From contig NC_068985.1 of NCBI RefSeq assembly GCF_001194135.2, positions 42,105,549 to 42,169,548 of the forward strand: a DNA stretch of 64,000 bases, given 5' to 3'. This DNA comes from Octopus bimaculoides (lineage: Eukaryota). The notes beneath the pieces are model-generated. The model saw only the letters and a list, made by a program, of their open reading frames with translations. It searched no databases and was not told the DNA's origin. Shown here piece after piece: positions 7,672-64,000 of this stretch; the first letter of the stretch is position 1; each line of letters begins with the position of its first letter. The translations under genes and the position numbers were made by a program.

Positions 7672-7824
7672 CATTATACACAAGTGTTATTCTTTATTGT
7701 ATTATACACAATGAATTAAGAGATAGTTTACTATATTTTTAAAACATAACACAATAATGTCCACAACTACATCAACATATCATTCAGTGATTTACTAAAT
7801 ATTTTTTCTTTCTTCTCATTACAG

Positions 7825-7861: not shown

Positions 7862-8472
7862 CATCCTTGGCTCAGAGATTTTACAAATACATGTTTGTAA
7901 TACAGAAATTACAAATATGTTTGTTGCAATTTACAGCTATATATCCATCATAATTTACAGTTACATATTTATCACAAGGAATATTTTTTAATTAAATTAT
8001 ACATCATCAAGTAGCTGTAAATATTTTGTGTGAAAATTTCCATTACTTCTGTATGAATGTCTCAAATTACATATACATACCTGTTACCTATAAAGGGTTC
8101 CAAACTAAAATTGTTATTATGTATAAATGTATGTTGCAAATTGCAGATTCATTCATGTAAAAAGAAGTTGTAAACAGCTGTATCATAAATCTGCAATAAT
8201 GGTATGTGTCACGATTTACGGGAACATTGTAGATAATCCTGAGACACAAACATACATTTATATCACAAGTAACTGATACAGACCTGTTACAAATTGGTGA
8301 CACATGTGTATGTCACAAATCACTGTTGTAGGCGTGTCGTAAATAACTGATATAGATGTGTTGCAAATCACTGACATGTATATATGTCACAAATAATTTA
8401 TGTATGTATGTATGTATGTATGTATGTATGTATGTATGTATGTATGTATGTATATGTGTGCGTGTGTGTGTG

Positions 8473-8516
<44 letters not shown>

Positions 8517-9767
8517 TTCACAAGATGTAAATATATTTCATATCAATAAAACTATTTAAAGAATTTCAAACTTTGTTTTGTGTTAAATTCAAAAGTATTA
8601 TGAATTAATTGAGAAGGTTCTTTTTGATGTGCTCAGTTCATGCTTATTACAAAATTCATAATTGCAATTAATAAATAAGTCCCAGCGTTGAATCTAAGCA
8701 GAGACTTACTTCAGGTCCATAAATTGAAGAATCATCTTCTTTCACCAAAGCTTGATTAAGAGAAAGCATAATTGAATGAGAAAATAAAATTGTTAAGTCA
8801 ACAGATTCAGGTGCAAAAAGAAATTAAAATTTTGTGCTAAAAAGTTAGGTTTATATAATCATGGCATACAAAATGTTATAGAAGCCTGCATATGATCTGA
8901 GTGCTGTAGGTTATCTATACCTGCTGCAAACTGATGATTCATTCATTAGACAGTTGAAAATATCCCCACAGTTTTTACTTTTCATCTTATTACTTGTAAA
9001 CAACTGCTAAATACACTTTGTAGTTAAGCAGGTAAAACAGTATCCAGAATTGAAATATCTGATTTTCCTATTTGCAGAAACATTTACATCTCAGGAAAAT
9101 TATGAACGAAAATGTTTAAAAAAAGAGATGAAATATATTTAATATGGATAAAATTATAGAGAATGATAAAAAGTATTTTTTAACAAGAATTTAAAGAAAC
9201 AAAGTATGGTCTGTGTCAGTTAAACTCAGTTTTTGTAAAAAAAATTAAGTTTGTGGAACTTAAACAAAAAGGGCTCAGTTCATAATGTCAGCTTTCTCCT
9301 TTCTGGTATCATAAAAACTAATCTTACTTTACGAATTTATAAGGAGAAGCAGTAACAAAGATTAGTATTTTAGGGACAGAATGCAATGAAAATTGAAATA
9401 ATGTATGTTGTACTGTAAAATGGGATACTTCTGTTAACGGTTTTATGTCAAAATTTATAAGTAATTGAAGAAATATCAATGTGAGCAATGATAATGGAGT
9501 TGAAAACAAAGTGGGCAGTGAATATGAAGGATTTGTTCAAAAGGACCCTGACAAGATGGTACAAAGTCAGTTTTGAGAAACATCAAGATAATCAAAATTT
9601 GACATGGTAAAGTTGATGAAATGGGTCACCTGAGAGTTGTAGAAATTTTTCCCAAGATAAAACCCTGCAGCAAATGCCTTTCACATTCTAGTGAGCAGCA
9701 ACTTATTAAAGACAAATGTACACATCTTTATATTGACCTTCGCTGCTTCATGTGTTCGTATTGTATA

Positions 9768-11100
9768 TCCATCTCCATCCATCTATTTTCTCTTTTCTCT
9801 GCTCACTATTCCTGGGAGGGTTTGGGATAGAGTCTCAGGCACCTTTTCCATAGGGTCCAATCAGAGGCAACCCTCATTAGACTTCTGGCTGCATTCTCAA
9901 ACGAGAACAACTGAGGCTATGCACTTTATCCATACATCTTGTTTCTGGCCAACCCCTAGGTCTCCGGCTCATTGGCTCGGCTTGAACAACCCGTTTTGAA
10001 ATTCTTTCCAGCGACATTCTAGTCGCATGTCCATAGTACTGGAGCTGCGATCCTTCCATGCGGAAAAGTAGCAGTTCGACCTGGAGAGACTCCCTGATCT
10101 TTGAGCTTTGTACCCTGTCGAGTAACGTTACTCTAGAGGCTCCTCGAAGGGATCCTATTTTGGTTGCCTGTATTCGTGATCGTACTGTTTCGGTCATTAC
10201 CCAACACTCACGATCGTAGGTGAGGAAAGGTACAAGAATCGAAATGAAGATAGCGAGTTTGGCTCTTTGTTTTAGAACCTCTTCTTCTCTGAGGATCGAA
10301 TGCTGGTCCCGGCGCATTACTGTATCAGCACCTAGAATCCTAACATCCAATTTAGCACCCTACCTTCCATCACAGCGCCGAAATACTTAAACTTCTCCGC
10401 TTATCTCAGTAACGTTCCTCTAACAAGCAGTGTGCACTGAGAAGACGCGTTTGAGAGGACCAATGCCTGTCTTCGTAACACTAATTCTCATCCCTGCTTT
10501 GCAACACTCGCAGTAAACCCATTTAGTGCAGGTCGAAGATCACCTTCTGATGAGCGAAGTGGCACCATGTTGTCTGCAAATATCAGTCGACCAATCCTAT
10601 ACCCACTGATTGCGATACTTCTACAATGGCTGCGCATATCAATCCAGAGCATACAAATTATGAAAAAGAGAAGCGAAAATACACAGCCCTGCCGAAGTCC
10701 AACACCCATGTTGAAAGGTTTCGACTTTGCACCATTTACATAAACATAAACACCTGGGCATTTGTAAAGGGACTTCACGGCAACCAGAAGTTTCCGACTA
10801 ATCCCAAACTCTTGCAAAATCCTCCTCAGCATGTCTGTGATATGTAGTCGTATGCCTTTTGGAAGTCTACAAAACAAGCATACACTTGGCATTATTCCCA
10901 CGATTTCTCGAAGACAGGGCTTTGAGTGAATATCACCGGAGTGATATTTGATTACTTTATAGTTTGTCTGAGTGTCGGTTTGGTGTCTGGAATGGGATAG
11001 CTTACCTCATGGGCAAGCTCTTTGACTTTGGTTGGTAATCTACCTAGGAGAAGGAAATCTCCGAAATAAAACCCGAGGTCTTGGAAGTTTCTATTTTTGT
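9768..11100 (-). mobile_element. Internally deleted RTE-clade LINE, Rex3/Expander-like
   Basis: RT motifs GLRQGC.FS.LLF and LIFAD(N). C-terminal AKLAIF.SI.VP.LTY..ECWVMTE..RSRIQA and RRPRG.P.TR. (GATG)-type tail at ~9768-9785. Stops and frameshifts present. Confidence 0.8.
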
Positions 11101-11446: not shown

Positions 11447-13026
11447 GGAATGTGCGCACGCTTCTTGACAATAAGTCTCCAGGGTCTGATGGAATCTGAG
11501 CAGAAGTCTTGAAATATGGGGGTGACAAAATGTTTGAACTCTTAAATATATTAATTTGTTACTGTTGGAGAACTGAGAAAGTGCCTCAAGACTGGATTGA
11601 TGCCATTTTAGTCTCCTTGTATGAATCGGGGCCAAAGGATCTGTGTGGTAATTTTCGTGGGATTTCGCTTTTGTCTGTGGCTAGAAAGGTACTTGCCCGC
11701 ATGTTAGAACGTTTAAATACTTTTATAGTTCCAAATAGAGTGTCTGGGTCTCAGTGTGGTTTTCGTTCCTCAAGGGGCACAGCTGATTGTATCTTTACTG
11801 TCAGACAATTACAAGAAAAGTGACTGAACAGAATCTTGCTCTATACCATTGCTTTATTGATTTGAGAAAAGCATTCGATACTGTTAATCGAAATGCTTTG
11901 TGACTAATTCTAAGGAAAATAGGTTGAAAAAAACAGTTGTAATGCATCAACCTGTGTGTTTGTAACCCCACTAAAATTTTTGTTAAGGGAAAGTTACTTG
12001 AGGTTGTCGATTCATTCATCTAACTTGGAAGCTCTGTTCAAAATGATGGAAATCTTGATACAGAAATATAGCTGCGAATTCACAGGACAGCAAAAGCATT
12101 TGGTGGCTTGGAGTCATACATTTGGTGCCAGCAACATATAAATAAGAATACTAAGCTGGCTCTTTACAAATCATTTGTCTTACCATCCCTGTTGTATTCC
12201 TATGAAACTTGGACTTGTTATGAAAGGCATTTTAAACTGTTTGAACAATTCCACCAAAAATGCCTTCATCGTATTTTAAAAATTAAATGGAGTTCTGTTA
12301 CTCCAAACACAGATGTCCTTGCATCTGCAGGCATTACCTCAATTAAAGCCATGATTTTGAGGAACCAATTGAGATGGTGTGGCCACATTGTTCGAATGGC
12401 AGATGAACGCATGCCGAAACAGCTGTTTTATGGTGAGCTTGCAGAGGGGAAACCTAAAAAGAAGGTTTAAGAACGGCATAAGGACTACTATGAAGTTATT
12501 TGGAATGGTTCCAGAAGATATAGAAACCCTTGCTTCAGATCGAGATGGATGGCGAACAAAGGTGTGGAGTGGAGTAAAAGCATTTGAAGAGGCCAGGATA
12601 ACGCAAGTAAGACTCAAAAGAGATCTAAAGAAGAATGTAACGATCGAGAAGGTGAGTGACAATGACCTTTTTGTGTGCACAGCCTGTGACAGACCGTGCC
12701 TGTCTTTGGCTGGCCTCAAATTTCATCTGCGAACGCATGGAAAACGAACCTCTACCAACTATTCTGACTATATGTCTGTGCACACCTTTGAATGCAGTGT
12801 ATGCCAGAAGGTTTGTAAATCCAACGGAGGCCTCAAAAGACATGTTAAGATCCATAAAGAGCAGAGCTTATCTGCAGGTATTGGCGGTCCAAGTCAAAGG
12901 TGCAATCTGTGTGGGTGTCTTTTCAGAACACTGTCTGGTTTAAAAAGCCACATCAGACGCCATGATGGTGCTAAGGTGTAGGTACAGGACGTGGTCAAAC
13001 TCTGTATAAGGAGTAGGCAATCACCA
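11447..13026 (+). mobile_element. Degraded RTE-clade LINE with internal RT deletion and three C-terminal C2H2 zinc fingers
   Basis: KSPGSDGI.AEVLK, NFRGISLLS, QCGFRSSRGTADCIFTVRQLQEK, LLYS.ETW, LRWCGHIVRM..ERMPKQLFYGEL, then CxxC...HxxxH x3 (12670-12963) and TAG at 12979-12981. The short 3' UTR runs into an N gap. Confidence 0.88.
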
Positions 13027-13369
13027 TNNNNNNNNNNNNNNNNNNNNNNNNNNNNNNNNNNNNNNNNNNNNNNNNNNNNNNNNNNNNNNNNNNNNNNNNN
13101 NNNNNNNNNNNNNNNNNNNNNNNNNNNNNNNNNNNNNNNNNNNNNNNNNNNNNNNNNNNNNNNNNNNNNNNNNNNNNNNNNNNNNNNNNNNNNNNNNNTC
13201 ACAGGTGTAATTAGTTGACGCCGTGCCAACCACTGAAGAATGGTGTCTCCAGCTTTTCCTAATTGAATGATAGTCCACGATTCCTCTAAGATTGATTCGT
13301 CCCTTTGCTTCTTTTACTACTTATCTCCCCCTTAATTTTTATTTACTTACTTTAACCAAACTGAACAAT

Positions 13370-14368: not shown

Positions 14369-14548
14369 ATACCTACCTACCTACCTACCTACCTACCTAC
14401 CTACTTACCTACCTACCTACCTACTTACCTACCTACCTACCTACCTACCTACCTACCTACCNNNNNNNNNNCTTACCTACCTACCTACCTACTTACCTAC
14501 CTACCTACCTACCTACCTACCTACCTACCTACCTACTTACCTACCTAT
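14369..14548. repeat. (ACCT)n microsatellite spanning a small N gap
   Basis: Read directly. Confidence 0.95.
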
Positions 14549-14861
14549 CTAATACATACATGCATATCTACATACATACAACCGTACACATACATATATA
14601 CGTACATATGTATACATAAACGTGCTATGACAACGATGTTTCCATTCATGCATAAGGGTACACACATACACAAACAGTTACTTATATACATACATACATA
14701 CATACATACATACATACATACAAACATACATACAAACATACATACATACATACATACATACATACATACGCGCATGTATGCATACATGGACGCATTCATA
14801 CATACTGACAAAACGTAGTATTTATAAACAAAATGTCATGCATGACGACGTTGCTTTAAAG

Positions 14862-20555: not shown

Positions 20556-21852
20556 TGTAGTGAAACTACCTACCGCCATTAGATACAAAACTGCTATCGC
20601 CATTCTTCTCATTTAAATATAAACAAACGCGAACGTAGGGGAAAACACCAGCCTTGTCATCACGTGACTGATTATTATTTGAAGCGGCAAATTCTTCGAA
20701 CCTTTCCCGCCAGAACGCAAACTGACCAATCACAGCCCTTAATAAGGTCACGTGATAGTGTTTTTCTATCACCGTCTGAGAGCCCCCTTAACGCTATAAA
20801 TAGATCAACTCATACCCACCAAATTTGTCTCGGTCCAGTTTCTCTTAGAGNNNNNNNNNNNNNNNNNNNNNNNNNNNNNNNNNNNNNNNNNNNNNNNNNN
20901 NNNNNNNNNNNNNNNNNNNNNNNNNNNNNNNNNNNNNNNNNNNNNNNNNNNNNNNNNNNNNNNNNNNNNNNNNNNNNNNNNNNNNNNNNNNNNNNNNNNN
21001 NNNNNNNNNNNNNNNNNNNNNNNNNNNNNNNNNNNNNNNNNNNNNNNNNNNNNNNNNNNNNNNNNNNNNNNNNNNNNNNNNNNNNNNNNNNNNNNNNNNN
21101 NNNNNNNNNNNNNNNNNNNNNNNNNNNNNNNNNNNNNNNNNNNNNNNNNNNNNNNNNNNNNNNNNNNNNNNNNNNNNNNNNNNNNNNNNNNNNNNNNNNN
21201 NNNNNNNNNNNNNNNNNNNNNNNNNNNNNNNNNNNNNNNNNNNNNNNNNNNNNNNNNNNNNNNNNNNNNNNNNNNNNNNNNNNNNNNNNNNNNNNNNNNN
21301 NNNNNNNNNNNNNNNNNNNNNNNNNNNNNNNNNNNNNNNNNNNNNNNNNNNNNNNNNNNNNNNNNNNNNNNNNNNNNNNNNNNNNNNNNACGACATCACA
21401 ACTAGTGATCAGCTCTGCCACACTCAGCCTCTCCTCACTTTCACATACAGAACTTTTCCTATAGTGTACTAAAAAACTGGTATAATTGCTCACGTGTTAT
21501 TGACTCTTTCTATTTGCTGTAATAACTCACATACACATACATGTATCACTCACATACACACTTTTCTTTGTATGACGGCCTGTCTTTGATTATGTTCTTA
21601 TATGTCGCATTCACACTCTCACACAGACATACATTTTTAACGCCACAATAAATATCTCTGTTATTCATCTAATACGGTTGTGGTCTTTCATTACTGGTCA
21701 CATATGTTATCGTCGTATAACATATCATATATATCACCTTTGATATATATTTTGTGTGTTCGACCGTGTGACACGTTTAAATAAAAGGAGTCCTCTGTTT
21801 TTCCATTCGTCACCATTTCTCCTTTTATGAGTTCTCACGGTCGTATCTTACA
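20556..21852 (+). mobile_element. Probable LTR (solo LTR, or two LTR halves with the interior collapsed in the N gap)
   Basis: Starts TGTAGTG and ends CTTACA. CCAAT (~20727) and CTATAAATAG (~20794) lie before the gap and AATAAA (~21780) after it. 4-bp TATA on both flanks as candidate TSD, though the flanks are low-complexity. Confidence 0.55.
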
Positions 21853-23345
21853 TATATATATAAGCTGCAAAATTTCTTTGGTTTAAACTTCATCCTGATT
21901 CATTTACGTTACTATGTGTTCAAATGATGTTAGAACCTGTCTCGCCTCAACATGGGTTATGTTTATTATTGTGAGATCGTCCATGAAACCCCTTACTGGC
22001 TGTTGTTGGTTGTTTTACTTCATTCTCGGTCCTTGAAATTCTTTATAAGCTGTTATTATTAGGTTAATTCCCATGATGAAAAGAATGGAGGAAATTGTGC
22101 AACCAGTTACAATTATCTTCTTCAAGATTCCTACTAAGTTGTAAAGTAGGTTGTTTCGAAGCGCAACTGGATGCCTCTGAAGTAGCTAGTGACCATTATC
22201 TTAATGTACAGTGGGATGTGGTTATGATCTAGGATTGCATGGACTAGCTGGAGTGTGTTCCGCCCTTCCGTTTGCCGTCCACAGAAAACACATATTGCCT
22301 ACACAAAATACCTTAAAACAGGATAAAAAGTGCCGCCCGGGGCGGACCGCCCCGCCCCAGCTATCTTAGTGACTGCATGTATGATGACTTGAAGGGTTGA
22401 TCCGCATGCATTGACCAAACCTTGCGAAACCCCTGTCATGTCACTTTTGCTTTTTTCGGCGTTCCAAATCATTTTGATGATTTTGTTTCAGTCAAATGAA
22501 AGCTATATGTCTACGTCCTGTTTATTGATATCTTCTCGGTGTATCTTACAGAAGAAATACTTTGGTATTATTAACTATCAGAAAAGATTAAAAAAAAAAA
22601 AGCTTATGGATTAGACAGTTCATAACTCTNNNNNNNNNNTTATATAATTCTTAAGCTTAATGTCAGTAGCCATCCCCTAGTTTATGAAAAAAATACAAAA
22701 ATCATTGTAAAGAACTGTGTGCTTCACAGTTCCAGCGACGCGGTGTTTGGCTATTGTGCGCATCCTCACATGTCCGAGATAGGAAGCTTCACACTAGAAA
22801 GTGAGCACTGCGTGAACGACAGTGCCGGGTGAAAGGTAGTGTTTCTTTTTGACTCCGTGTGAGTTGTGCTTAAAACGTGTTTATATTATTGAATGTGATA
22901 AGTGTAGAATTAGATTATTATCCTGCTTCCAATTTCAGTGTTGCTGATAGGATTTGAAAAGTAGGCACCCCCCATTTTGTGATTTAGTGGGGATTTTTAA
23001 AAAAACAAGGGATAACTCGCGGCGATGTTTAGTAAACAAATTAAACACACTAGCTGGCAGTGGCTAAAATGCGAACCGATCAAGTTTATGCATAAATTTT
23101 CTTTTTATACGTTTGTTTCCTTTTACACAATATTAAAACAACGACTAAAACCTTTTTGAATCAACACCGCCACTAATTTTATCTACGAGCCGTCACTGCT
23201 CTTGACTCATTGCTGTTGTTATTGCTGTTTAATCCTTCGATCAAAGAATCACATGATCAACCCATAAGTTTTTCAAAAACAATTATCTAGAATTGTATTT
23301 GCTAATATGATTGTAGAAGATCATCGTCGTGTGGTCAAGTTGGCT

Positions 23346-24227
23346 GCGTGTATAATCACCTTGATCACCTTGACCGACCAATCCATCGGGCGTCCATTTG
23401 ACACCACTGGTCACAACACGCTGTCCACTCCTCTCTGGATCGCGCCTTCCTCATCCACGTGGTCTCAATCGCCCTCCTAAAATCGTAATTCCATCGTCGT
23501 GGAGGCCTTCCGAGTGGTCGTTTCCGCTCGCGCGGGTACCACTCGACAACTGCGCGGGTCCACCGATTATCGGTGAGCCGGGCGACGTGTCCAGCCCATC
23601 TAAACTTGCTGCGCATTTATTCTACGGTGACATCCCTCACGCCGGACTTCTGTCTGATGACCTCGCTACTGATGTGCTCTCTCAAAGAGATTCCAAGCAT
23701 TGACCTCTCCATGGCTCTTTGAACTGTTACCAATCTCTTCAAAACTTTTCACCGCATGTCTCGAGCAGATCTTCAGAGGCATCGACTGGCAAGGCGGCGT
23801 CAACATCAATGGCAAGCTATTCACCCACCTCCGTTTCGCTTATGATATTGTAATCATCGCTGAAACCACGGATCAGCTTCAGAGGATGCTGACGGAGCTC
23901 GACATCAAAAGCTCTGCAGTAGGTCTCAAAATGAACCGCATGAAAACGAAGTTCATGCGATCCGACAATATACCAACAGGTCGAATTGATGAAATAGGTA
24001 AAGGAATATGTCTACCTGGGACAAAGTGAATATGTGCCGCGACATCGAAAAGGAGATCTCGCGGAGAATAAGGGCCGGATGGAAGGCGTTTAATGGCATA
24101 AAGGATGTGCTCAAGGGAAGGGTGGACAGGACCACCCGCGCCAACCTCATAAATAGCACAGTTCTACCTGCAATGTTATATGGTAGTGAAACATGGGCTA
24201 CAACAAAGAGAGAAGAGCGTGTATAAT
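23346..24227 (-). mobile_element. 5'-truncated RTE LINE with inverted 5' segment and 11-bp TSD
   Basis: TSD GCGTGTATAAT at 23346-23356 and 24217-24227. Sense 3' segment on minus (23357-23738; FRWAGHVARL.DNRWT...RPLGRPPRRW; CAAGGTGAT tail repeats). RT segment on plus (23730-24217; HLRFA.DI, LYGSETW). Confidence 0.9.
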
Positions 24228-51563: not shown

Positions 51564-52070
51564 TACAGGGTGTCCCAAAAGCCACTGATGGGTTTTAATT
51601 TTTAATAACTTCTTTAACTTTACAAATAAATGCAGAAAAATTTAATACAATATAAAGGACATAATGAAAATTAATATGCACAAGTCAAATTTTGTAACAC
51701 CGCTACATCACATATGAAAAATGACATCGCTTAAATGGCAGCCATTTTCGGCTTCGCTCGCCCGTGCTCTTTCCAAAACTTGCACCATAACACTCTCAAG
51801 AGTTTCAGACTCCGCTTTTCTGATTTCTCTATTGATGTTTTTCTTCAGTTGCACCAGGGTCTCCGGTTTGTTGACGTAAACCCTCTCTTTCAAATATCAC
51901 CACAAGAAAAATCCGGGCTAGTCAGGTCTGGGAAACGTGAAGGCCAGTTGATATTGCCGTAGCGGGAGATTGTTCTCTCTCCAAAGCACTGCCGTAGCAA
52001 CTGCATTGTTTCTTTTGCAGTATGAGCAGTTGCCCCATCTTGCTGGAATCATGTGCGAGGTCTATTTTGA
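51564..52070 (-). mobile_element. Tc1/mariner-superfamily transposase 3' end with one TIR
   Basis: TA+CAGGGTGTCCCAAAA terminus. Minus-strand FQQDGA.AH, WPSR.PDLT..DFFLWGYLKERVY.NKPETL..LK.NI..EI (maT/rosa-like motif). Confidence 0.8.
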
Positions 52071-52290
52071 ATGGCCTTCGCATTCCCCAGTCAGTTGTGT
52101 CAATCTTGCATTCAGTCAGAATCTTTCACACAATCCTTAAAATGTAATTTTGGCTTATCCCATACAAATACCAGTTCGCCATAAAGGATTCGTTTTGGAA
52201 TTCTACTGTCATCTAGTCGCATGCCAAGGCCTATCTAACGAGTCTGTGTTTACGGATGTGAACTTCAATGCTCAGTACTTCAGAATCAGG
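52070..52290 (-). mobile_element. RTE LINE 3' fragment
   Basis: GLGMRLDDSRIPKRILYGEL...KPKLHFKDCVK on the minus strand. Confidence 0.6.
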
Positions 52291-52386
52291 CATATGAGTA
52301 TTACATACATACATACATACATACAAGATCGTAATATAAACCTTCGTATTTTTTATGACTAAAATCTTGCTTCGATTAATTTACAG

Positions 52387-55300
52387 GCGGAGATGGAAAA
52401 AACTGGAATAAGTCTGCATTTAACAAGGATTCAAAAGACTTCAATATTGCCACACAAGATTATATCCCGCATGATCTAAATTATCGGACAAAAATATTCC
52501 AAGGGTCTCAGAGCAAGAAAGACAGCTATAAATCAACGAAGAGAACGTTCTTCGAAAATCCAGCCTCAACTCATGCAGAAAGCGCTGATAGTTCACAAGA
52601 ATTTAACATGAGACGTTATTATAATACAATGAGTTCTTTGCGAAATACTAGGAGGAATAGTAGAGATAAACAAACGGTGAATGGGAAAAATTCGACAGAG
52701 AAAAACGTTGGTCGGCAAGAGCCAAATGCAAAGAACTATAAAAGACCAATGAAAATTATGACCTTAAACAAAAACGGTCGGTTGAATATGCGCAATAAGA
52801 AGACTGACATCCTGCAAATGTACAGGCAACTACTTTTAAAAACTGGACAAATGGAAAAATTTAGAAAGTTAGGAAAAGTTAAGCAACGTCAGTTTATTCG
52901 ACGTTTAATGCTTAAAAACCGCAAGATAGCTAAATTAAAAACTCAAAATGAAATGAACCATATTCATCAGATAAGTCGAGTACCGGAGCTAAATCAAGAT
53001 ACTGAGACAAGTCATGTGACTGGGCTGAGTCATGTATCTGAAAAAGCAACAACTGAAAGTTCAAACAGATTCTCAAATACTCCAACTTCTAGAAATACCA
53101 CGTTGTTGAATGTTTGGACAGATGGGATGCACAATGACAAACACGTTTCTTTAAAGAATGAACCCAGTTATCGAAGCACATCTCATCCTCTAAAATCTTA
53201 CAAAAAAGATTATAGATATTCGCCGGAAGAAAATCAAAGATCACAGAAACATAAAAAGGAACAAGTTATGCAGCAAAAGTTCGATAGTTTCCAACGTGAG
53301 AAAGGAAAAAATAGAAAACCATTTCTTGTCATGACTTCTCCAAATATGATAGATTCCGGAACACATCAACCAAATGCATTTATGTTTAATCAAAATGGCG
53401 ATGTCGTCCATTACAGAGGCTCTTCTTATCAAACGATTTATCCCGAATTTGAACAACAAAGATCATTTACCTTCAAAAATAATATGCCATATCTAAGAGA
53501 TATTCCTAACACATCACAAGCTGATATTAAGACTAAAAAAGAAGAGGAAAATTCGTCTGAAAACAAAATAGACGATGAAAATAATGCGAAAAAAAGACAA
53601 GATGAAAACGCAGACAACGAAGATGATGTAGATAATGAAATAAAGAAATCATCTGCAGAAGATAAAGACAAGTATGATTCTCATCAGCAGACTCAAACCC
53701 GACTCCCTGCCACCTTTACAATACGAGCTAAAAATTACAATGATATGAGTCCAAGCTTTCGGACACCTCGATACGATTTTACTCAACAATTTAATCGGCG
53801 CCAAAAGAAAAAACGTTTAATTCAAAGAGGAAAACTTCATTTACCTTCAAAAAACCTTCCTCTTAAAACTTTTAGAAATAAGTTCAGAGTAAATCGAAGA
53901 CAAAACCGATATGGCATGCTCAGAGAAACACCACCTTGGTCTAAGTTCCGTGCAAATATTGGTCAGCCTTCTCAGTTTGTCATGATTTCAAGCGACCGTA
54001 GAAAAGATATGCCAATTCCTAGGAAGGAAGATCAAGATTCCTCGGAAGACACTTCAGAAAGTGAACAAAGTCAATTTTCCCCTCCTTACTATCACACGTT
54101 GTCCCCGGGTCTAAATTCAATGGATATTGCCGGGGGGTTTCAATATAACTATCATCCTTATGCTGGTAACGATCAACTAGATCAGCAAAACAAAGTGGAT
54201 TATTATCAACAATATCCCATTACACATGTTGAGGACAATAACGAAGATAGCTCTGATGAAAACACTTCTATAGAGCAAGAGCAAGGAGACGAGACAGATT
54301 ACCAAGAACCACCCTCATATGTAGGCATGCACGGGTCAGATGTTGCTCTTGATACAGGTAGAGTAAATGAAGTGAACCATTTTTACGGTGAAAGTACGAT
54401 TGTACCTTTAGGTCAATTGAAACATGATCAAGATGATGACGACCAGGATGACAATATCAACTCCTCAGAGAACGCAGTGGAAGAAACATCGGAAGAGCAA
54501 GATAATCAAAAACAAATGCCGGAAAATATCCACAAAAATCGTGATTCACCTGACACTCTCCTAATCGTACTAGATAATGACTCAAAGACAAAGAAAAATA
54601 TTGATAATGAAGAACATAATCAATTCAAACAATCCTCTGCCGAAGACTTTACTGAAGGTAAAAAAGCTAGTCCAATAATGAAAGCCGATCACTCATTATC
54701 AAATGGAATATTAGTTATACTAGATAATGATGGAGAAAAACCAATAAGCACAATAAAACCCACTCCAGCAATAGAGAAAAGTAAACACTTTCCTGAAGAT
54801 AAACCTAAGCAATCTGCAAAGACAATTAAAATAAACGTTAGTAGTAATTCTAGTTCTCTTGAAATGTCTAACAAATACTCGTATTCATTTTTAAACGAGA
54901 CCTCAAATAAACATTCATATAAACCTCTGAATATCACAAAAAGCAATGAATCATCAAACAACAGCAGTAACAATTTCACCAAAACTATAACCTCTATTAA
55001 TGATATTTCCTTTAGTTTAAATAGTTCTGATCAGAGTCATCGACCATCTTTTAGTGTAAACAGTTCTAATCAACTTTACAGAACATCTTTGAAGCCCCTG
55101 CGGCCATCAAGTGAAAAGAAAAATTCTTTGAATAATCTTTTGATTGAATTAGGAACTAAAGATAACATATTCAACATCCGAACGCCCAGTAGAGGAATTA
55201 GCCAACGTGCTGGAGATTACCATAAAGGAATATCGGAAAGCAAATCACTAAGAAAAGATCAACGTTTCCGACTTGTAAACAAATCACGCCCTGTTACAAA

Positions 55301-58300
55301 CCGTTACAAAAGCAATGGGCGTAAAATAAAAAAGAAATTTAGGTACAAAAACATTGGCCATCCTTTCAAAAACGTTCGTCGCACTGGAAATAGTAACATT
55401 TCTATGAGGAAAAGATTTAGGAAATTATACCCAAATATTCACTTCCAAGCTGATACTGAACTGTTTGGTAACCGTGTTAGAGAAGTCGTAGAAATTCCTG
55501 ACATTGATTGGACATTAAATGGATCGACTTTGGAAGGTGATAGCATTAATTTATTGAAGAAATCAAAATCAACTGAAAATAAAACCATAACCTCCGGTCA
55601 TTTACCTCAAGAAGATCTTTCAGAAAGATTACCTCAAAATAATAATGTAATCCGAGGTATACATGCCATCAACACAAATATATTAGATTCCCAGAAAACC
55701 GATTCCCAGTCCATTGAAGATGACAACAGATACCGGAAAATACCCTTGGAGTATCCAAAAGATGTTGACGAATACAGACTTGATCACTTACATGGAATTC
55801 CGAACGTGTTCACTGTGGTGTCAAATACGAAAGATGATGATGACGATGATGATTCTGCTGAATATAGTCAGTCGAATCATAACCTAGTGATCAACACGAT
55901 TAAGTATAAATCACCCAATATAGATATGAATCCCATTGATTCTTTAAATCCTGTCTATTTAAATACCTTAAAAGATATTCGAAACTTTGTAGATACACAC
56001 AGCGAAGATAAAGATGATTTCAATGAAAGACTAGATGAAGAAAGAGAAGAAGTGCAAGAAAATATGGAATACTCAAATAAACAGCCAGCATTTCATCCAC
56101 TTTTGGCGAGAGGCAGAGAAGATTCGTATAAGACCGTATCTAATATTCAGTTAAATAATGAAAAGATGTCTCCTGTTTACAGGGAAATAAGCGGCTCACA
56201 AGAAGAATTTCCCGATATTGAGAGAGATCATGTTATTGGCGACTATCATTATCCAAAATTCGATCAATTGAAAACAAAGATACAGCTTCCCACTGAACTA
56301 TACCAAGATAGACTATATGGAATCGATTCGGATGACGAAAATGAAGAATTGCCGCTGATGTACAGAGATATAATGTACAAAAAGCGCTTATCCAAACACG
56401 ACAATAATAGAATGTCGCATGATAATGACGATACATTTTCTACATCGGAAAGAGTAAACACAATGAACACAAATAAGCAAAATAATCTGAACAATTTCTA
56501 TGTGCTGGGCAATAAGCCAAGTAAATTAAACCATACAGTTGGTGATTTCCACAACAATAGTAGAATAAAAGTCAACCACCCACTAATGTCACACAATTCA
56601 ATAAGTGCTCTCTATGGACAATCTCCATTAAACCCTGACGAAACATATGATTCAGTCGAGGATAGCAACTTGGACTCCACTAGTATGGCGGATGAATTAA
56701 ACTATCGCAATAAAAAACGGAAGTTGATTTCTTCAAGTTCACACAGTTTGCATAATAAAATACTTGTTACAGGCGCTGATACACCTGGATTATTAGGTTC
56801 AACGAAAAGTGAACGAACATTAAACGAGAATCGTCTGAAAAATACTTTGCAAAAGAAAACTTCCAGCCTTTTCAAGAGTCATCTACGTAACCGTGATAAA
56901 TTGTCAGATGATGCTTCCATCCGTTCTATAGAAGGGGTTCGATCTGACCAAGAATTTTATAGAACCTCGTCTGGCAGAAAAAGTCAGATTCTCGGTCAAG
57001 AAAATCGGGAAATCTATTTGCCCAGAGATTTTCATAGCTCCGAAATGATATGGAGAAACGGAAAAAGTCCTTTACGTGGGATAGAGACTCAAGATATACC
57101 TCGTCAATATTGGCGAATTTATCAACTTCTAAAGAATGGAAATTTACCAGAAAAATACAGACCGTTATATTATCACTTAAAAGACGAAATAGATAAAATT
57201 GCCAATAAATCTTCGCAAGGTGACATCTATAAAACCAATGCTCATAATAACCTTTCAGATCCAAATGAAACCTTGAATGAATTTGATATAAAATTAACTA
57301 ATAGATCTGGTAGTTCTCCATTGTGGGACAACAAAAATGAAGTAGATATTCTTAAGAGAAACGAGTATGAGAAGAAAACAGATAAGGAAGCTACCGATAT
57401 TGGTCTAGCAATGCAAAAGAGCAAAAAGAAATTGAGTGTAGTTGATGTTCATGATGACACACAAATCGCTTTAGAAGGAGTTTATCTGAAGGGTGGTTTA
57501 GACTCTAATAATAAGGATTTGGGGACACCAGAATTTGGTGGTCGGCCATTGGAAGATGAAAGTATTTCTGGAGATTTTGGAACCAATACATTTGAGGAAA
57601 ATAATAAAAACTGGAGGGATACAAGTTTCGATATTGGCATTTCAAATCCAAAGTGGAACGATACATTAGCTTATGAAGAATCCAGGATGAAGGAGAAAAC
57701 TGCATTTCTGAATGATAAGGACTACAATATGAATAGCATGGATTACCAAAAACTGCACAAAAACTTTTCTGATTATGAATTAACAAAAGGCCATAAGAGC
57801 GAAAACAGTTATCCGTTAGTTGATGAACAATTGCATAAAACACAATATAAAAATTACTTCGATGAAAATAGTCCTGGACTCTTTGAGAATGGAGTTCATT
57901 TTGGGGTTCATGGCAAAGCAGATAAAGGCCAGCAGAAACACGATATAAATACAAATTCTCGAGGACCAAACAGCAAAGTTCTCGGTCCTAATGATCAAGA
58001 GAGTATACAGTATCCCACAGAAAACGGAAGTCCACTCACGGATATTATTGAGAATCATCAATATGAAAACGTATATAATTATCATGGGAGTATATATGAC
58101 CCATACGATTACCTAGGGGAAGTGGATATCAGCCAACTGGACCCAGTTGAAAAGGCTTTTCAAATACCTTACAACAGTGTTCCAGAGAGTACACTCACTA
58201 AATTTGATAATCAAGGAAATCATTTAGAATCTTCAGATTTAACAAACACAAATTTACAAAAAAATAGGTTAATGAAAGACAATTCAAATTTATTGACCCA

Positions 58301-61300
58301 GTATAGTGATGAAATGAATTTAAACGGTCGGGTAAGCCCAGAAAAACAGACCCCTAGTATCGATAAAGATACAGAAAAGATCAAGAGCATGAGTAGAACC
58401 ATAAACATAGATAAACCAGGAATCTTTGGTAGTGATTTTCAAGAGAAATCTGATCAAGTTGTATTAGATAAATATTTATCACATGATGTATTCCAAAAAG
58501 TATACGAAAGTCAAGGGGAAGGTAAACGCTTACATGAAAGCCATGAGGGAAGAAAACACTTGCAAGACAGCCACGGGGAAAAAAAACGCTTGCAAGACAC
58601 CCATGGGGAAAGAAAACACGTGCAAGACAGCCATGGGGAAAGAAAACACTTGCAAGACAGCCACGGGGAAAGAAAACGCTTGCAAGACACCCATGGGGAA
58701 AGAAAACATTTGCAAGACACCCATGGGGAAAGAAAACATTTGCAAGACAACCACGGGGAAATAAAACACTTGCAAGACAGCCATGAGGGAAGAAAATATT
58801 TGCAAGACACCCATGGGGAAAGAAAACACTTGCAAGACAGCCATGGAGAAAGAAAACACTTGCAAGACACCCATGGGGAAAGAAAACACGCACACGACAA
58901 TCGTAGAGAAAGAAAGCAAGGACAAGGTAGCCATGAAGAGAAAAAATATTTACATGGTAATTTTTGGGAAGGAAAGCATTCTCAAGACAGTTCTAGAGGA
59001 GATAGAAAACCTTCGCATGATAGTCTTTGGGAAGGAAAGCACTCAAAACACAGTCGCAGAAGAGCAAAGCCGTTTCAACACAGTCGCAGTGAAGCAAAAA
59101 TTCTACAAAGCCATAGGGATATTAATGATGATGAAGATGATAGTAAAACACAAGAAATAGATATTGCCAAGCCAAATGATAATGAGTTAACAGAAGACAT
59201 TGACGATGGCGATGCAAAACATTATTCTGGAAATAACTACTATTCTGATATCATTGTCCAGCCATTAGGCTTAACAGAGAAAAACTTGCCAAACACATTT
59301 CAAATATCTCCAAGTAACGTCTTTTCAACATCGGCAACAATAATACATCGGAATAAAACTACAGAGGAGAGCAGAACTGATGCTAAAGAAACTGATGTTA
59401 AATATATTGATCACAAAATGTTTTCTGTAACTCAGAAGAAAATTTTCAAATCATCGTTACCTGTCTCTGTAAGTAACTTAGAAGGTACTGACAACAAATG
59501 GCTTTATTCTAGTACGGATAACGGAGATGCAATTCGAAATGTCTCTTCCGAAGAAAAACAAGGAAAACAATTTGTTGACGTAGGTGTTCCGCTGACGTCT
59601 TCACATCCATCACAATTTCAGAATATCTCTAGGACATCAGATGCTATTGATATAGATGGAAGTCGATTTAAAGAAATAAGCAATATTACAGAAGAGACTG
59701 AATCTCAAGGAAATCAGTCATTGTTTTTAGATAGAATTTCTTTTGAACCAACTTTATCGGATTTGGATAGTACGTCTGTCAAAATAAAGAAGTACAACAC
59801 TCACCAAAGATTAGTTACATTTGGTAAGGATGACCACCAAGTATCAAAACATGGCTCGTCTGAGTTAGGAGGAATTTCCAGGAGTGATTTCAATTCAAGC
59901 CAAATATATGAGGACCCGACATTTCGCGGAGAGATGGTACAGGCTGATGATGCAAATGCGACAGAAATTCCACAACTAACATCAGCAAATGACTTTTTGA
60001 TATACGATGAGAATTATGATCTTTTACCTGAAGAAAGTTCGAGAGACGAAAAGAACAGCAGTGAAAATTTAGATGAAGTGCATGATGATAGCATGAACAC
60101 CTCTGTGCATGTTGAAGGGACTGTAGAAAAATGGGGACGTGGCGGACATTCGATTAAACCAACAACATCACTATCTGATGATAAAAACATCGATGACATT
60201 GCAAAGAAAGACACTGAAAACGATCCGTTAAAATCTCAACCATCGTACATGGATGAGAGTGAACATCTATTAGCAGAGATAGAACTCGGAGAGTCATTTC
60301 CTCAGTTAGAGGATAAAAAGATACCCCATACACCAGAAGAGGAATACCGTGAACATCAACATCACATGGGTGCCTCCCCTATTAACCGAGATATTCATCA
60401 GCTACATCAAATCTTACCAGATATTCTGGTTGAAGAACCTGATATCTCACACAAACCAACTGTTCTTCAAACGACAACTGCTTTGAAAGACACTGAAAAG
60501 CATGTTAAAATTTCTGAAACAGTAAAAAAAGAAACTGTTCCAGCAATTGACATTGACAAACAGGTGTTCTTTAAGGGATCAGATATAGATAAAGAAAAGA
60601 AAAGAATCACTGGAAGAACAGAAGCATCGAAACTGGACTTTTTTGAACACGATTCGTTTCAGAAGCCCGAAACACTCATGATGGAGACAACTGAAGAAAC
60701 TCAAACAGATGCTAAGGATTCTCCGTCTACAAATATTATTGAACAAGAAGTAACTGGAGAAAGAACTGAAGAGAACATTTTACAAACAGCTGAAGACAAA
60801 ATACTTCCAACTGATCTCGGTTTTAAAACAAAAGAAGACTCATTTGATTCTCATAAGAAATCTACTCATGGAGTTAGATCTGAAATACCTTCACTAGGAC
60901 TTAACACTAAATTTATAACTTATGAAGGATCTGCCTTACCAACAATAACAGCAGGGCTTCAAGAAAGTCAGTCCTCATTCCTCCATTCATCTAATAATTC
61001 CGTCCCAAAAATTGAGACACAAGATGTGCTAGGTAAATTAATCACTGAACAAGGTGAGAAAACGTCTAAAGAAAGTTATACGGGAACAACACGTGATATC
61101 AAGGCTGATCCAGACATGAAAACGTTAGGATTGCTTCAATCTAGGAAAGAGGTGAAGACATTCAATAAAACAGGCCTGCAAGACAAACTTGATATTGTTA
61201 AATCGGATACTACTTTGCTTGGTATCGAAGAACTTATAATACATGAATCTAAACCACAAAGCACATTGCAAGGTAGTGATAAATCACAAAGTCAACACCA

Positions 61301-64000
61301 TGAATATCTAGATGGTATTTTACAAAGTACTGATAAATCTAGAAGCCGTCAACCGACTACAAAGGTTGGTACTTTACAGAGTGGGGAACCATTTGAAACA
61401 GATGTTACCATTAAGGGTTCTGGTAAATTAAAAGAATATGAAGCACCTGCAAAATATGTTACATTACAGGGTAGACAGACATCAATGAAATCTAAATCAA
61501 CAGTAATGGATGGTACTGCACACGATATTGATATATCGAGAAGTCCTAAAACAATTCAGATTAATGATAGCATATATAGCAGTGGCAGTAAATTACATGG
61601 CTATGAATCATCGACACAGCTCCATGATACTTATGAACATAAAGCTACTCATGTAGGAGACAGCACTTCATATAGTAGGGAGAAATCAAAAAAATCTGAA
61701 ACAACTCTGCAAGACAGTATTTCTCAGGCTACAGAAGAAAAACGACTACCTAGCTTATCTCATCTAGATGGCGCATCACTTGGTGCAGACATATCAAAAA
61801 TATATGTGGAGCCAACACAAGCAGTCAGTACCTTGAGAGATACATCTCAATTACATGAAGCTTCATATGGTAGAGGTGATTCAAGAGGACATACACCGAT
61901 TCAAGTAAATCATACTATGCAACATATAGAAGAATTAAGAGGACAACAACCAACTCAGTTATATGGTACCTTGCCGGGTAAAGATGAACATAAACACACA
62001 CCAGTTCAGCTAGATGACGCATTGCTTGGCATTGATGAATCACATAAACTTGAATTGTCCCATACAGACAATACCTCACAAGGTCCAGAGAAAGAAATAT
62101 TTCACGAGGCGAAACTACATAATGCTTCCCATAGTATAGATGAAGTTAGAAGACATGAGATGATTAAATTGCAAAATATTTCATATGACATTGAGGAATC
62201 GAAGAGGAATGAATCGACCCAGGTACTCAACACATCACTTAGTATTGATAAATTAAAAGAACATAAACCCATTCAACTGAACACTACCTTAGATAGTACA
62301 GATATATCGCATAGACTTGGACCTTCTCTACTAGATGGTAGCTCACATGCTACTAGTGAATTCTACAGGCAGGAATCAACTATTGTAGACTATGCTTTGC
62401 ATGGTATACATGAATCAAAAGAATACGAACCAACTCAAATAGATGGTACGTCGAACGTTGGTACAAGTAAACTGAATGAATATGAACCGACTATCGATGG
62501 TACTTTGCATGATACAAGTGAATTATTTAAGCATAATCAATCTCAGTTATATGGTACTTCACATGGTACAGACGCATTTAAAAGGCAAGAACCGGTTCAG
62601 TTAGAGGGTACCGTGAACATTGGTTCAGATAAACAGGGCGAATATGAACCGACTCAACTAAGTGGTACTTCTCATGATACAGGACGACTTATTAATGATA
62701 AATCATCTCTGTTAGATGGTGTTTCAGATGGATTTAATAAGTCCCATGGGCAGGAACTGATTCAAATAGATGGTATAGATGGTATCTCATACGATACAGG
62801 TGGTTTGCATGGACCTAAACTCTCTAAATTAGATGGTACCTTACGTGATACAGGTGAGCTGTATGGACACAAGTCAACAGAACTAGCTAGTACTCTTCAT
62901 GGACATAAACCGACTCAAACAGATGACATCTCTCATATTACAAAAGGATTATCTGAACAAGAAGCATCACTGCTAGATAGTTCTACTTATAGTACAGGTG
63001 AATTAAATACTCATGGACCAACTCAGTTCGAAAGCATCCCATCACATAGTATAGATGGACTACAAAGTATAGGTGGACTACAACTGTCTCAATTAGATCG
63101 TAGAAGACAGGAAACAGATGAACTACCTGGACACAAACCATCATCTCCAGATAGTACTCCATATAGTACAGATGGACTGCATGGATATGAATCGTCTCAA
63201 GTGGATGGTATTTCGTATAGAATAAAAGAATCAACAAGTCATAAATTAACTCAAGCAAATGGTAGCTTGTATAATGTAACAGAATCAAGAAACCATTCAG
63301 AACCGCACCAGTATGATACTTGGCATAGTCTAAATAAATATGAAACTACTCAATCAGATGGTAATAGACAAAGTAAGGGTATCTTTAGAAGTAGTGAAAC
63401 TGTTAGATCGGATGTTGACTTACCTTTTAACGAAACATCAAAGCACGGAGAAGCAACGAAAACAGATGATGGTATTAAATTAACTAGTTATCGAATACCG
63501 AAACTAACTGGTGTATCTCTGGAAAGTGATGGGTCCTCGAGACAACATGGTACATTACATGTTACAGATGATAATTTACAGGATTCTAAAAGTAATGTAA
63601 TGGGTGATAGCTCACATGTTACAGACAAAATGAAAAGCCACAGACAATTTAAATTTGATCATACAGTGAGCAGTTCGGACAAATCTAGAATTACTCAGTC
63701 AGCTAAACAATATATTAGCTTGGATGATACTGAGAAATCGAAAACATTGGATAGTACTTGGCGTAGAACTGATGAGTTGGGAATGTTTCAAACGCCTAAA
63801 ACTGACATTATATATCACAGTACTGAAAGACCAAAGAGTTATGAACCTGTAGGGACATATGACATGTTGCATGGTTCAACTAATATAGATGGTACCTTAC
63901 AAGATACTGATATATTGAGAGGTTACGATCCATCACAACCAGATGCTAGCCCATATAGTACAGATAAAGAAGGAGTGTATGTGTCAAAAACTGATGAAGC
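52387..64000 (+). CDS. Giant coding exon (>=11,614 nt, ~3870 codons, open at window end) of an uncharacterised, probably secreted, low-complexity protein
   Basis: Manual translation of the frame with codons starting at 52389 (GGA GAT GGA AAA AAC TGG... = GDGKNWNKSAFNKDSKDF...) shows no stop through 63998 (...EGVYVSKTDE). In-frame TAA at 52377-52379 is followed by acceptor TTTACAG|GC (52380-52386), so the exon starts in phase 1. First in-frame ATG is at 52608. No microsatellites or TE relics interrupt it, unlike the rest of the window. Confidence 0.93.
58530..58889 (+). repeat. Coding 30-bp tandem repeat, 12 units, consensus peptide LQD[S/T]HGERKH
   Basis: Units read directly: LHESHEGRKH, LQDSHGEKKR, LQDTHGERKH, VQDSHGERKH, LQDSHGERKR, LQDTHGERKH x2, LQDNHGEIKH, LQDSHEGRKY, LQDTHGERKH, LQDSHGERKH, LQDTHGERKH. 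Degenerate units continue to about 59110. Confidence 0.95.
61250..64000 (+). repeat. Coding degenerate repeat, ~18-19 aa period, consensus approx. [EK]PTQLDGT[LS]H[DG]T[GD]ELxGH
   Basis: Examples: YEPTQIDGTSNVGTSKLNE, NQSQLYGTSHGTDAFKRQ, YEPTQLSGTSHDTGRLIND, KLSKLDGTLRDTGELYGH, EASLLDSSTYSTGELNTH. GATGGTAC/GATAGTAC recurs at the DNA level. Confidence 0.75.

Follow-up and report, generated by a model that had tools for sequence, protein, structure and literature searches.

A giant cysteine-free exon of Octopus bimaculoides in a predicted gene for a secreted, mucin-like VWD/VWA glycoprotein

The end of a 64,000-nucleotide (nt) stretch of the Octopus bimaculoides genome (RefSeq assembly GCF_001194135.2, contig NC_068985.1, positions 42,105,549 to 42,169,548 of the forward strand; this whole stretch is hereafter referred to as the window) is occupied by one very long open reading frame (ORF) which runs off the window. 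The locus raises the question of whether this ORF stands for an undescribed system, as an original prediction made from the sequence of the window had suggested, or for one part of a larger gene with known relatives. We favour the second answer and consider it rather probable, from the gene structure and the domains described below, that the ORF is exon 2 of a 13-exon gene of ~70 kb for a secreted mucin-like VWD/VWA glycoprotein. The predicted product has ~5,577 amino acids (aa), a mass of ~634 kDa and an isoelectric point (pI) of ~6.1.

A stop-to-stop scan with the standard code found the frame 52380..63998 on the + strand to be open for 3,873 codons up to the window end. It contains neither a stop nor a Cys codon, at which ~283 stops and ~74 Cys codons are expected from the base composition, and the other two forward frames hold 218 and 510 stops and 78 and 102 Cys codons, respectively. 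The openness of the frame is far outside chance. Both the run of about 3,870 consecutive sense codons leaving the window and the lack of Cys had been claimed in the original prediction; the computed translation confirmed the first, and the second was found to be true for the window frame and for the full exon of 4,661 codons. The in-window part of this giant exon, which starts at base 52387 in phase 1, is the following:

52387..64000, + strand: giant exon (exon 2), in-window part; the whole exon is G000:C5:42157935-42171917

The exon is preceded by a polypyrimidine tract and then an AG acceptor at 52385-86 (...cttcgattaatttacAG|GCGGAGATGG), with an in-frame stop closely upstream. Beyond the window, the genome sequence keeps the frame open for 866 codons more, and the search of the own genome returned an open frame of 4,739 aa at the locus. 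The 3′ end of the exon is a consensus donor, GCTT|GTGAGTA, which lies 2,369 nt beyond the window; downstream of it, the frame turns into Cys/Phe-rich junk. Thus delimited, the whole giant exon measures 13,983 nt (3 x 4,661), is of phase 1-1 and has 4,660 complete codons with 0 Cys and 0 stops. Two pieces of the exon, searched against the 2.34-Gb genome of 145,327 contigs, gave self matches only, so that the exon is single-copy and no paralogue of it was found with these two pieces.

Is such a frame maintained as coding sequence? An orthologous exon is present in Octopus sinensis (locus CM016863.1) with a DNA identity of 95.8%, and intron 1 together with the flanking intron DNA shows ~91% identity between the two species. 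The dN/dS comparison against an orthologue, which had been proposed as a check, was run with the Nei-Gojobori method over 4,583 aligned codons and gave a rate of non-synonymous change (dN) of 0.034 and a rate of synonymous change (dS) of 0.079, i.e. a dN/dS of 0.43. Windows along the exon ranged from 0.20 to 0.81, the least constrained part (0.7-0.8) being a zone of 18-aa repeats described below. Eleven of the 13 interspecies indels in the exon are multiples of 3, and the GTGAGT donor is conserved in O. sinensis. Judged from this comparison, the giant exon is under purifying selection as coding sequence.

The absence of Cys could be followed in the same alignment, as no Cys was present among the 4,583 aligned O. 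sinensis codons. Cys-creating changes account for ~2.5-2.7% of the possible non-stop non-synonymous single-base changes in the exon; 9-10 of them would be expected among the 362 non-synonymous differences and 0 were observed (P about 1e-4, in a test which is approximate since acceptance rates vary among residues). By this measure, Cys is actively excluded from the exon-2 chain by selection.

The original prediction had described the exon as absent from the ORF track. This does not extend to annotation, where the own-genome annotation has a 4,519-aa read-through model whose start is an internal Met and whose end is a stop beyond the donor. In O. sinensis RefSeq, the gene is represented by two split models, both called 'uncharacterized protein'. 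The O. sinensis orthologue corresponds to LOC118763570 (3,196 aa) plus the gene model just upstream (2,220 aa).

Where would translation start? The in-frame stop before the acceptor is TAA here and TGA in O. sinensis, and the first Met of the exon here is Arg in O. sinensis. The 83 codons preceding the first Met common to both species are open and 94% identical. As these codons are conserved and the first Met is not kept, translation most likely starts in an upstream exon. A phase-aware scan of the upstream 52 kb returned one top candidate for this exon, which sets the limits of the first intron:

32614..32668, + strand: candidate signal-peptide exon, coding part, with ATG, 18 codons (MKIQIFLLFIQATILPSS), a G and the donor G|GTGAGT, phase 1
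32669..52386, + strand: intron 1, ~19.7 kb, with microsatellites, assembly gaps and a mariner-like remnant, ending in ...ttaatttacAG

In the 52 kb, scanned on both strands and in all phases, the candidate is the sole ATG-started stretch of 15-29 codons with a GTRAGT end and a hydrophobic core >= 2.5. When it is joined to the giant exon, the split codon G|GC encodes Gly, MKIQIFLLFIQATILPSS-G has the shape of n-, h- and c-regions, and the predicted N-terminus of the joined product reads MKIQIFLLFIQATILPSSGGDGK.... The O. sinensis 2,220-aa model holds 2,202 giant-exon codons and its remainder amounts to 18 codons and 1 nt upstream; the candidate fits as exon 1 because its 18 codons equal this leftover length. 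We therefore take it as probably the signal-peptide exon of the giant-exon gene, in agreement with the earlier suggestion of such an exon upstream, and the protein as probably secreted. Another candidate, at 39661, came from a looser scan and was rejected, since both its donor and its h-region are poor. No Cys-rich or long coding ORFs were found in the 52 kb upstream, which places the giant chain directly after the predicted signal peptide. A pyrimidine tract at 32560-32613 (+), ending in ...aaatttccAG, lies directly before the ATG at 32614, so that a separate 5′ untranslated exon may precede the ATG exon. There is also an ATAAATA 13 nt before this ATG, which is too near to be its TATA box.

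The extension of the frame past the window in search of C-terminal domains, which had been suggested as a check, led to C8, TIL, EGF, VWD and VWA exons downstream. The O. sinensis 3,196-aa RefSeq model continues from '...FLRKNESA' into Cys-rich sequence, and all of its 11 small downstream exons were found here by tblastn, at window-equivalent positions 68231 to 102933, followed by a stop. Their amino acid identity to O. sinensis is 92-100%, except for one extended match with 81%. At the junction of exons 2 and 3, the split codon T|AT encodes Tyr, in exact agreement with O. sinensis RefSeq ('...NESA-YYLVESV').

The resulting tail (exons 3-13) has 898 aa with 65 Cys (7.2%), and its domain order is a 4-Cys linker, C8-like, TIL, EGF, VWD, C8, TIL, EGF and VWA. 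In the tail, Pfam recognised TIL at 158-212 (1.3e-6), VWD at 314-469 (9.4e-18), EGF at 674-699 and VWA at 719-889 (3.5e-34), and the C8 of the second unit was recognised (1.4e-12) when pieces of the tail were scanned alone. The first C8-like-TIL unit aligns to the second with E = 2e-11. Exon 3 (72 aa), which encodes the short 4-Cys linker, shows a weak match to the middle of VWD (E = 0.016) and is possibly a VWD remnant. The VWD starts with CSCLVSGLSRYRTYDG in both species, in which GLSR replaces the GDPH autocleavage motif; a paralogue has CSASGDPHYRTFDG. Among solved structures, the best match of the tail was FCGBP (8rde, 2e-118), with an alignment that extends over FCGBP repeat units, followed by MUC5AC (1e-42), VWF (~1e-40) and MUC2. 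The VWA domain matched collagen VI alpha-3 and the mussel protein PTMP1 (4.6e-21); it covers positions 1-172 of the 174 of the Pfam profile, and the residues of its metal-ion-dependent adhesion site (MIDAS; DVSGS, GTT and TDG, read by eye) are encoded by the last exon, where O. bimaculoides and O. sinensis show 100% identity. No transmembrane segment was found in the tail, where the top 19-residue hydropathy is 1.33 and lies within a VWA strand. The statement that no domain could be recognised is hence right for the exon, in which the Pfam scan was empty, and does not hold for the gene.

The giant-exon chain has a polyampholyte composition (S 11%, K 8.5%, D 8.5%, E 7.4%, T 7.3%, N 6.8% and H 4.3%; D+E 15.7%, K+R 13.5%, S+T 19.0% and P 4.5%), at which the second half reaches 22% Ser+Thr. 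Its mean Kyte-Doolittle hydropathy is -1.09. The top 19-residue window reaches 1.07 and no membrane-like hydrophobic segment was found with such windows, just as had been claimed for the exon. The Pfam scan, covering the 3,873 aa of the window and the last 790 aa, returned no family. Disorder prediction, another of the checks proposed earlier, gave a normalised hydropathy of 0.38, below the charge-hydropathy boundary of 0.42 at a net charge of ~0.02. In addition, a single-sequence AlphaFold2 run on the last 870 residues of the window gave a mean predicted local distance difference test (pLDDT) score of 32, without helices or strands, in a mode of prediction that tends to low confidence. With its low hydropathy, no Pfam match and no predicted fold in the region modelled, the exon-2 chain has the properties of a disordered chain.

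The modular layout described in the original prediction, with charge blocks, a His decapeptide array, an acidic spacer and an 18-aa periodicity, was recovered. The parts of the chain are as follows:

52389..55988, + strand: N-terminal charge-block region, with Lys/Arg-rich alternating with Asp/Glu-rich stretches
54555 and 54705, + strand: duplicated LL(I/V)VLDND motif, DTLLIVLDNDSK and NGILVILDNDGEK, 50 residues apart
54834..55134, + strand: cluster of N-glycosylation sequons, 10 N-x-S/T per 100 aa
58422..59100, + strand: His-rich decapeptide array GERKHLQD(S/T)H, with a clean core at 58515-58889 and degenerate flanks
59121..59222, + strand: acidic spacer INDDEDDSKTQEIDIAKPNDNELTEDIDDGDAKH
61299..64000, + strand: degenerate 18-aa repeat zone, ~LDGTxHDTxELxxHxPTQ, which extends ~150 nt past the window end

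The net charge per 250 aa over the first ~1,250 residues is +26, +16, -30, +25 and -17, and an acidic run, DDDDDDD, is located at 55830. The LL(I/V)VLDND pair sits where constraint on the exon is strongest (dN/dS 0.2) and may represent a short interaction or beta-strand motif within an otherwise disordered chain. As for the sequons, in which the chain had been described as very rich, the local density at 54834-55134 is real, whereas the overall number of 61, against 51.8 +/- 6.2 in shuffles (z = 1.5), is compositional. The core of the His array has a period of 30 nt with 12.5 copies and 86% matches in Tandem Repeats Finder; the array has 13 copies in register, is 15% His and makes up ~4% of the chain. 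On the opposite strand, at 58381-58992 (-), there are Cys/Phe/Leu-rich frames of 156-203 aa which are by-products of the 30-nt repeat, and they were rejected as genes since they mirror it. The 18-aa periodicity runs from about exon aa 2970 to 3920 with autocorrelation peaks at lags of 18, 36 and 54, and this zone is rich in Ser, Thr, His, Gly and Asp. According to chunked self-BLASTP, internal similarity is confined to the His array and the 18-aa zone, and ~75% of the exon is unique sequence.

How old are the two parts of the gene? For the exon, the closest public relative is the O. sinensis protein (~90% identity), and no homologue outside Octopus was found in a word-indexed search, which has limited sensitivity for fast-evolving disordered sequence and whose matches to the whole exon were the model of the genome itself and that of O. 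sinensis. The signal peptide with the first 2,181 exon residues had no match in a word-indexed collection that apparently lacks the O. sinensis 2,220-aa model. The restriction of the exon to this lineage, as originally proposed, is in line with these searches. An exhaustive HMMER search with the tail returned 4,472 matches, mostly multi-unit FCGBP-like or collagen-VI-like proteins, at which the sole match that was co-linear in a single stretch was a zonadhesin-like protein of Argonauta hians (815 aa, 36% identity). This protein consists of a signal peptide, two PAN-like modules (identified by eye from the sequence), EGF, VWD, C8, TIL, EGF and VWA. Paralogous VWD-C8-TIL(-VWA) genes in the O. 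bimaculoides genome were located as follows:

G000:C18:10762479-10779763, + strand: true orthologue of the Argonauta hians 815-aa protein, 59-70% identity
G000:C3:46.0-46.2 Mb and 141.43-141.50 Mb: two clusters of paralogous VWD exons, from the own-genome search

The giant-exon gene has 34-46% identity to the Argonauta hians protein, in comparison to 59-70% for the C18 gene, and is therefore an old paralogue rather than the orthologue. A '2,989-aa open frame' at the paralogous VWD locus C3:141467118 was rejected, as it is a gap of N; a recurrence of giant exons in VWD-C8-TIL paralogues is therefore not shown by it. More distant relatives of the tail include zonadhesin X3 of C. gigas (27% identity). 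An IgGFc-binding protein-like relative in a scallop has an N-terminal Cys-free array of the HSKEKHSKESKE type, made of His, Lys, Ser and Glu, which indicates that charged His-containing arrays recur on VWD proteins.

The literature on the locus name and the repeat peptide gave no match, and that on octopus VWD/zonadhesin and on cephalopod giant exons had nothing specific to this gene. Octopus skin-mucus proteomes contain VWD and VWA proteins as well as many uncharacterised ones, of which none can be tied to the giant-exon gene, and 'zonadhesin' transcripts in the oviducal gland of O. maya are not assignable to it.

By its domains, the predicted protein belongs to the VWD-C8-TIL superfamily (FCGBP, zonadhesin and the mucins), with FCGBP and zonadhesin-like proteins being nearest, and the suggestion of an unknown system did not survive this assignment. 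From the same comparison it is a variant of the mucin-like VWD proteins which stands outside each named family by the features that define them. It shares the VWD-C8-TIL assembly with FCGBP and zonadhesin-like proteins, which are secreted, disulfide-rich and known from mucus or adhesion settings, and it is co-linear with the Argonauta hians zonadhesin-like protein over EGF-VWD-C8-TIL-EGF-VWA of the tail. However, FCGBP has 13 VWD-C8-TIL units and zonadhesin 5 D-domains, whereas here there is one complete unit and one C8-like-TIL in which no VWD can be recognised. In FCGBP and mucins, the VWD carries a GDPH autocleavage motif, in place of which GLSR is present here. FCGBP and zonadhesin-like proteins have no counterpart to the Cys-free region of 4,660 aa, and the VWA is C-terminal here. 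Zonadhesin proper has MAM domains, a transmembrane segment and a short cytoplasmic tail, in contrast to the protein described here, with no MAM match and no transmembrane segment.

In the MUC4 gene, a signal-peptide exon is followed by a giant exon 2 and a series of many small exons that encode VWD/EGF domains. The likeness to it is in exon layout only, with a tiny signal exon, a huge Cys-poor exon and small Cys-rich exons. MUC4 has NIDO, AMOP, a transmembrane segment and a cytoplasmic tail, none of which was found here, and its Ser/Thr-rich tandem repeats differ from a chain with ~75% unique sequence and a C-terminal VWA end. In gel-forming mucins, a giant and essentially Cys-free central exon encodes an extended hydrated domain between VWD assemblies. 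MUC2, MUC5AC, MUC5B and VWF have VWD-C8-TIL assemblies in common with the giant-exon gene, the mucins also a very large central exon, and by analogy disulfide polymerisation is likely to be common to them as well. On the other hand, these proteins have an N-terminal D1-D2-D'D3, whereas here there are no Cys-rich ORFs in the 52 kb upstream; their C-terminal VWC and CTCK were not found by Pfam in the 898-aa tail, which ends in VWA; and the central domain of the gel-forming mucins is rich in Pro/Thr/Ser, unlike the chain here with S+T 19.0% and P 4.5%.

Marine proteins that are rich in His and crosslinked by metals include the flanks of mussel byssal preCol, the Nereis jaw protein and the His-rich proteins of squid beak and suckers. 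A His-dense array in a secreted protein and a VWA like that of PTMP1 are features in common with such material proteins; nevertheless, there is no sequence homology, and the array here is highly charged, not Gly/Ala-rich, and only ~4% of the chain.

If the gene model is right, the protein would enter the secretory pathway through the signal peptide of exon 1. Its VWD-C8-TIL module could form disulfide-linked dimers or multimers, as in VWF, MUC2 and FCGBP, and its VWA/MIDAS domain could bind a partner in the matrix, in the way of collagen VI or of PTMP1 from the mussel byssus. The giant exon-2 chain, whose contour length is ~1.7 um, would project as a hydrated, space-filling brush or gel and take the role of the mucin domain. 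The charge blocks would favour electrostatic self-association, and the His array might provide crosslinks that depend on pH and metals (Zn, Cu, Ni). Glycans may be carried by the Ser/Thr-richer second half (22% S+T) and by the sequon cluster. The probable reason for the exclusion of Cys from the chain is that free thiols, spread over 4,660 disordered residues, would disturb the disulfide pairing of the 65-Cys tail. The overall function would be that of a mucin-like or extracellular matrix scaffold. From the interpretation as a secreted, lineage-specific structural protein, probable secretion and the lineage-restricted exon can hence be kept, and an independent novel system cannot.

A bolder proposal, which we put forward tentatively and with a good deal less confidence than the gene model, is that the protein forms the chief structural polymer of a secretion or matrix specific to octopuses, such as sucker lining, egg cement or the mucus of skin and funnel, and represents a new class of 'mucin' that is not based on Pro/Thr/Ser (PTS) domains. 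Here, a Cys-free polyampholyte of 1.7 um with a His decapeptide switch would have arisen de novo as one exon and been added to an old anchoring cassette of VWD/C8/TIL/VWA, replacing the N-terminal VWD half, and gelation would occur by charge-block coacervation together with His-metal and pH crosslinks rather than by O-glycans.

Several points weigh against the reading as a secreted mucin-like glycoprotein. The joins between exons 1 and 2 and between exons 2 and 3 are based on consensus splice sites, matching phases and the Gnomon models of O. sinensis. The composition of the chain is not mucin-like (S+T 19%, P 4.5%), and its N-terminal Lys/Arg blocks look like nuclear-protein sequence. Multimerisation, matrix binding, metal binding and glycosylation are extrapolated from domain families. 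The pLDDT of 32 is weak support for disorder when taken alone, given that single-sequence AlphaFold2 tends to low confidence anyway. Finally, the O. sinensis frame is broken twice, by a 181-nt block in the His array and by a 1-nt deletion, which the alignment places as follows:

window-equivalent 58639 and 63370 (O. sinensis locus ~9400 and ~13950): O. sinensis frame breaks

Because of these two breaks, O. sinensis RefSeq splits the gene into the 2,220-aa model and the 3,196-aa LOC118763570, at which 30-odd residues are bridged by an artificial intron. Since dN/dS stays below 1 downstream of both breaks, it is more likely that they reflect an assembly error or a very recent change than pseudogenisation. 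It would be very surprising if the ORF were a decaying remnant, i.e. a recent pseudogene or an exonised repeat which is still open. Apart from the two breaks, the dN/dS near 0.7-0.8 in the 18-aa repeat zone and the failure to find exon homologues beyond Octopus would agree with decay, but 14 kb are open against ~340 stops expected (the composition estimate scaled to the full exon), dN/dS is 0.43 overall with windows down to 0.2, also downstream of the supposed frameshifts, and in-frame indels are in excess, Cys is avoided and three quarters of the exon are non-repetitive unique sequence. It is also quite improbable, although less so than decay, that the giant ORF forms a gene of its own which starts at an internal Met and encodes a disordered intracellular protein, for example a nuclear or cytoskeletal one, with its linkage to VWD/VWA being a fusion made by gene prediction. 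Among the giant single exons of animals, many code for disordered proteins of the nucleus, N-terminal Lys/Arg blocks such as RRQKKKRLIQRGK resemble nuclear localisation signals, and the existing 4,519-aa model has just such a start and reads through the donor to a stop. Nevertheless, the frame is open over the 83 codons before the first conserved Met, with 94% identity between the two species, and the first Met here is Arg in O. sinensis; the phases of the consensus acceptor and donor match both the signal-peptide exon and exon 3; O. sinensis RefSeq joins the exon to the VWD/VWA exons; and the selected exclusion of Cys is expected in a secreted chain with a disulfide-rich module and would be needless in the cytosol.

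The gene could also be the one proposed here and its usual product another. If the giant exon were a skippable cassette, the common product would be a secreted VWD/VWA protein of ~920 aa and the giant isoform would be limited to a tissue or stage. Skipping would keep the frame, as the exon is of phase 1-1 and its length is a multiple of 3 (3 x 4,661 nt; G + AT = Asp), and the nearest co-linear relative, from Argonauta hians, has only 815 aa, its orthologue here being on another chromosome. However, purifying selection over 14 kb implies that the long form is made and important, and a symmetric phase is expected by chance in ~1/3 of exons, so that we regard this possibility as rather unlikely. 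Our doubt is of the same degree for the possibility that the same protein, instead of forming a hydrated gel, serves as a scaffold for minerals or metals in a hard or semi-hard tissue (statolith, stylet, beak, radula or sucker lining); its acidic blocks and His array would bind Ca2+ or transition metals, and its VWA a chitin-associated matrix. Mollusc shell and byssus commonly contain matrix proteins with VWA domains (Pif, BMSP), and the DDDDDDD run at 55830, the D+E content of 15.7%, the 15%-His array and the PTMP1 match of the VWA would all suit such a role. Yet no chitin-binding domain was found by Pfam on exon and tail, the pI of ~6 and near-balanced charge are unlike those of strongly acidic biomineral proteins, and most of the VWD-C8-TIL relatives are proteins of mucus, clots or adhesion.

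Should the model of a secreted mucin-like VWD/VWA glycoprotein hold, the product would be among the largest secreted proteins predicted in a cephalopod, and its gene is at present split or truncated by an error of the gene model in both octopus annotations. It would mean that the plan of a mucin, with a signal exon, a giant Cys-free exon and a disulfide-rich VWD tail, has been filled with a charge-patterned polyampholyte carrying a His array and not with a glycosylated PTS domain. This is of relevance for cephalopod biomaterials (adhesion, mucus and egg attachment), for the origin and upkeep of lineage-specific giant exons, and for the question of why extracellular disordered regions exclude Cys, which is measurable here as selection between two species.

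With regard to the DNA around the giant exon, mariner/Tc1-like transposase remnants ('FQQDGATAHTAKETMQLL...' and 'LPYSPDLAPSNYQLFPQLKKHL') are present in the introns on both sides of it, and the upstream one ends ~340 nt before the acceptor of the exon:

51711-52048 and window-equivalent 68914-69252, - strand: mariner/Tc1-like remnants, identified by motif and without Pfam match

Most of the upstream 52 kb consists of (TG)n and (TATG/TACA)n-type microsatellites, which give spurious 'CVCVCV' and 'MYVCMYVC' ORFs on both strands, and it is interrupted by runs of N. No other gene was recognised in this part (window 1-52386). Retroelement fragments are also located there, with a C2H2 zinc-finger frame beside them:

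1012-1201, 7241-7693, 8356-8556, 14548-14835, 25429-25693 and 38734-39375: examples of microsatellites
13028-13198, 20851-21389, 37740-37921, 39404-39561, 48614-48808 and 50059-50490: six N runs of 158-539 nt
14462-14471, 22630-22639 and 46511-46524: three N runs of 10-14 nt
23673-24029, + strand: long interspersed nuclear element (LINE)-like reverse-transcriptase fragment (RVT_1, 5.5e-8)
10488-11006, - strand: LINE-like reverse-transcriptase fragment (RVT_1, weak, 3e-3)
9877-10359, - strand, and 12072-12470, + strand: neighbouring ORFs associated with retroelements, no Pfam match
12373-12981, + strand: C2H2 zinc-finger frame of 202 aa (zf-C2H2, 8e-9), which ends at the gap 13028-13198

The zinc-finger frame could be an exon of an expanded octopus ZNF gene or part of a retroelement.

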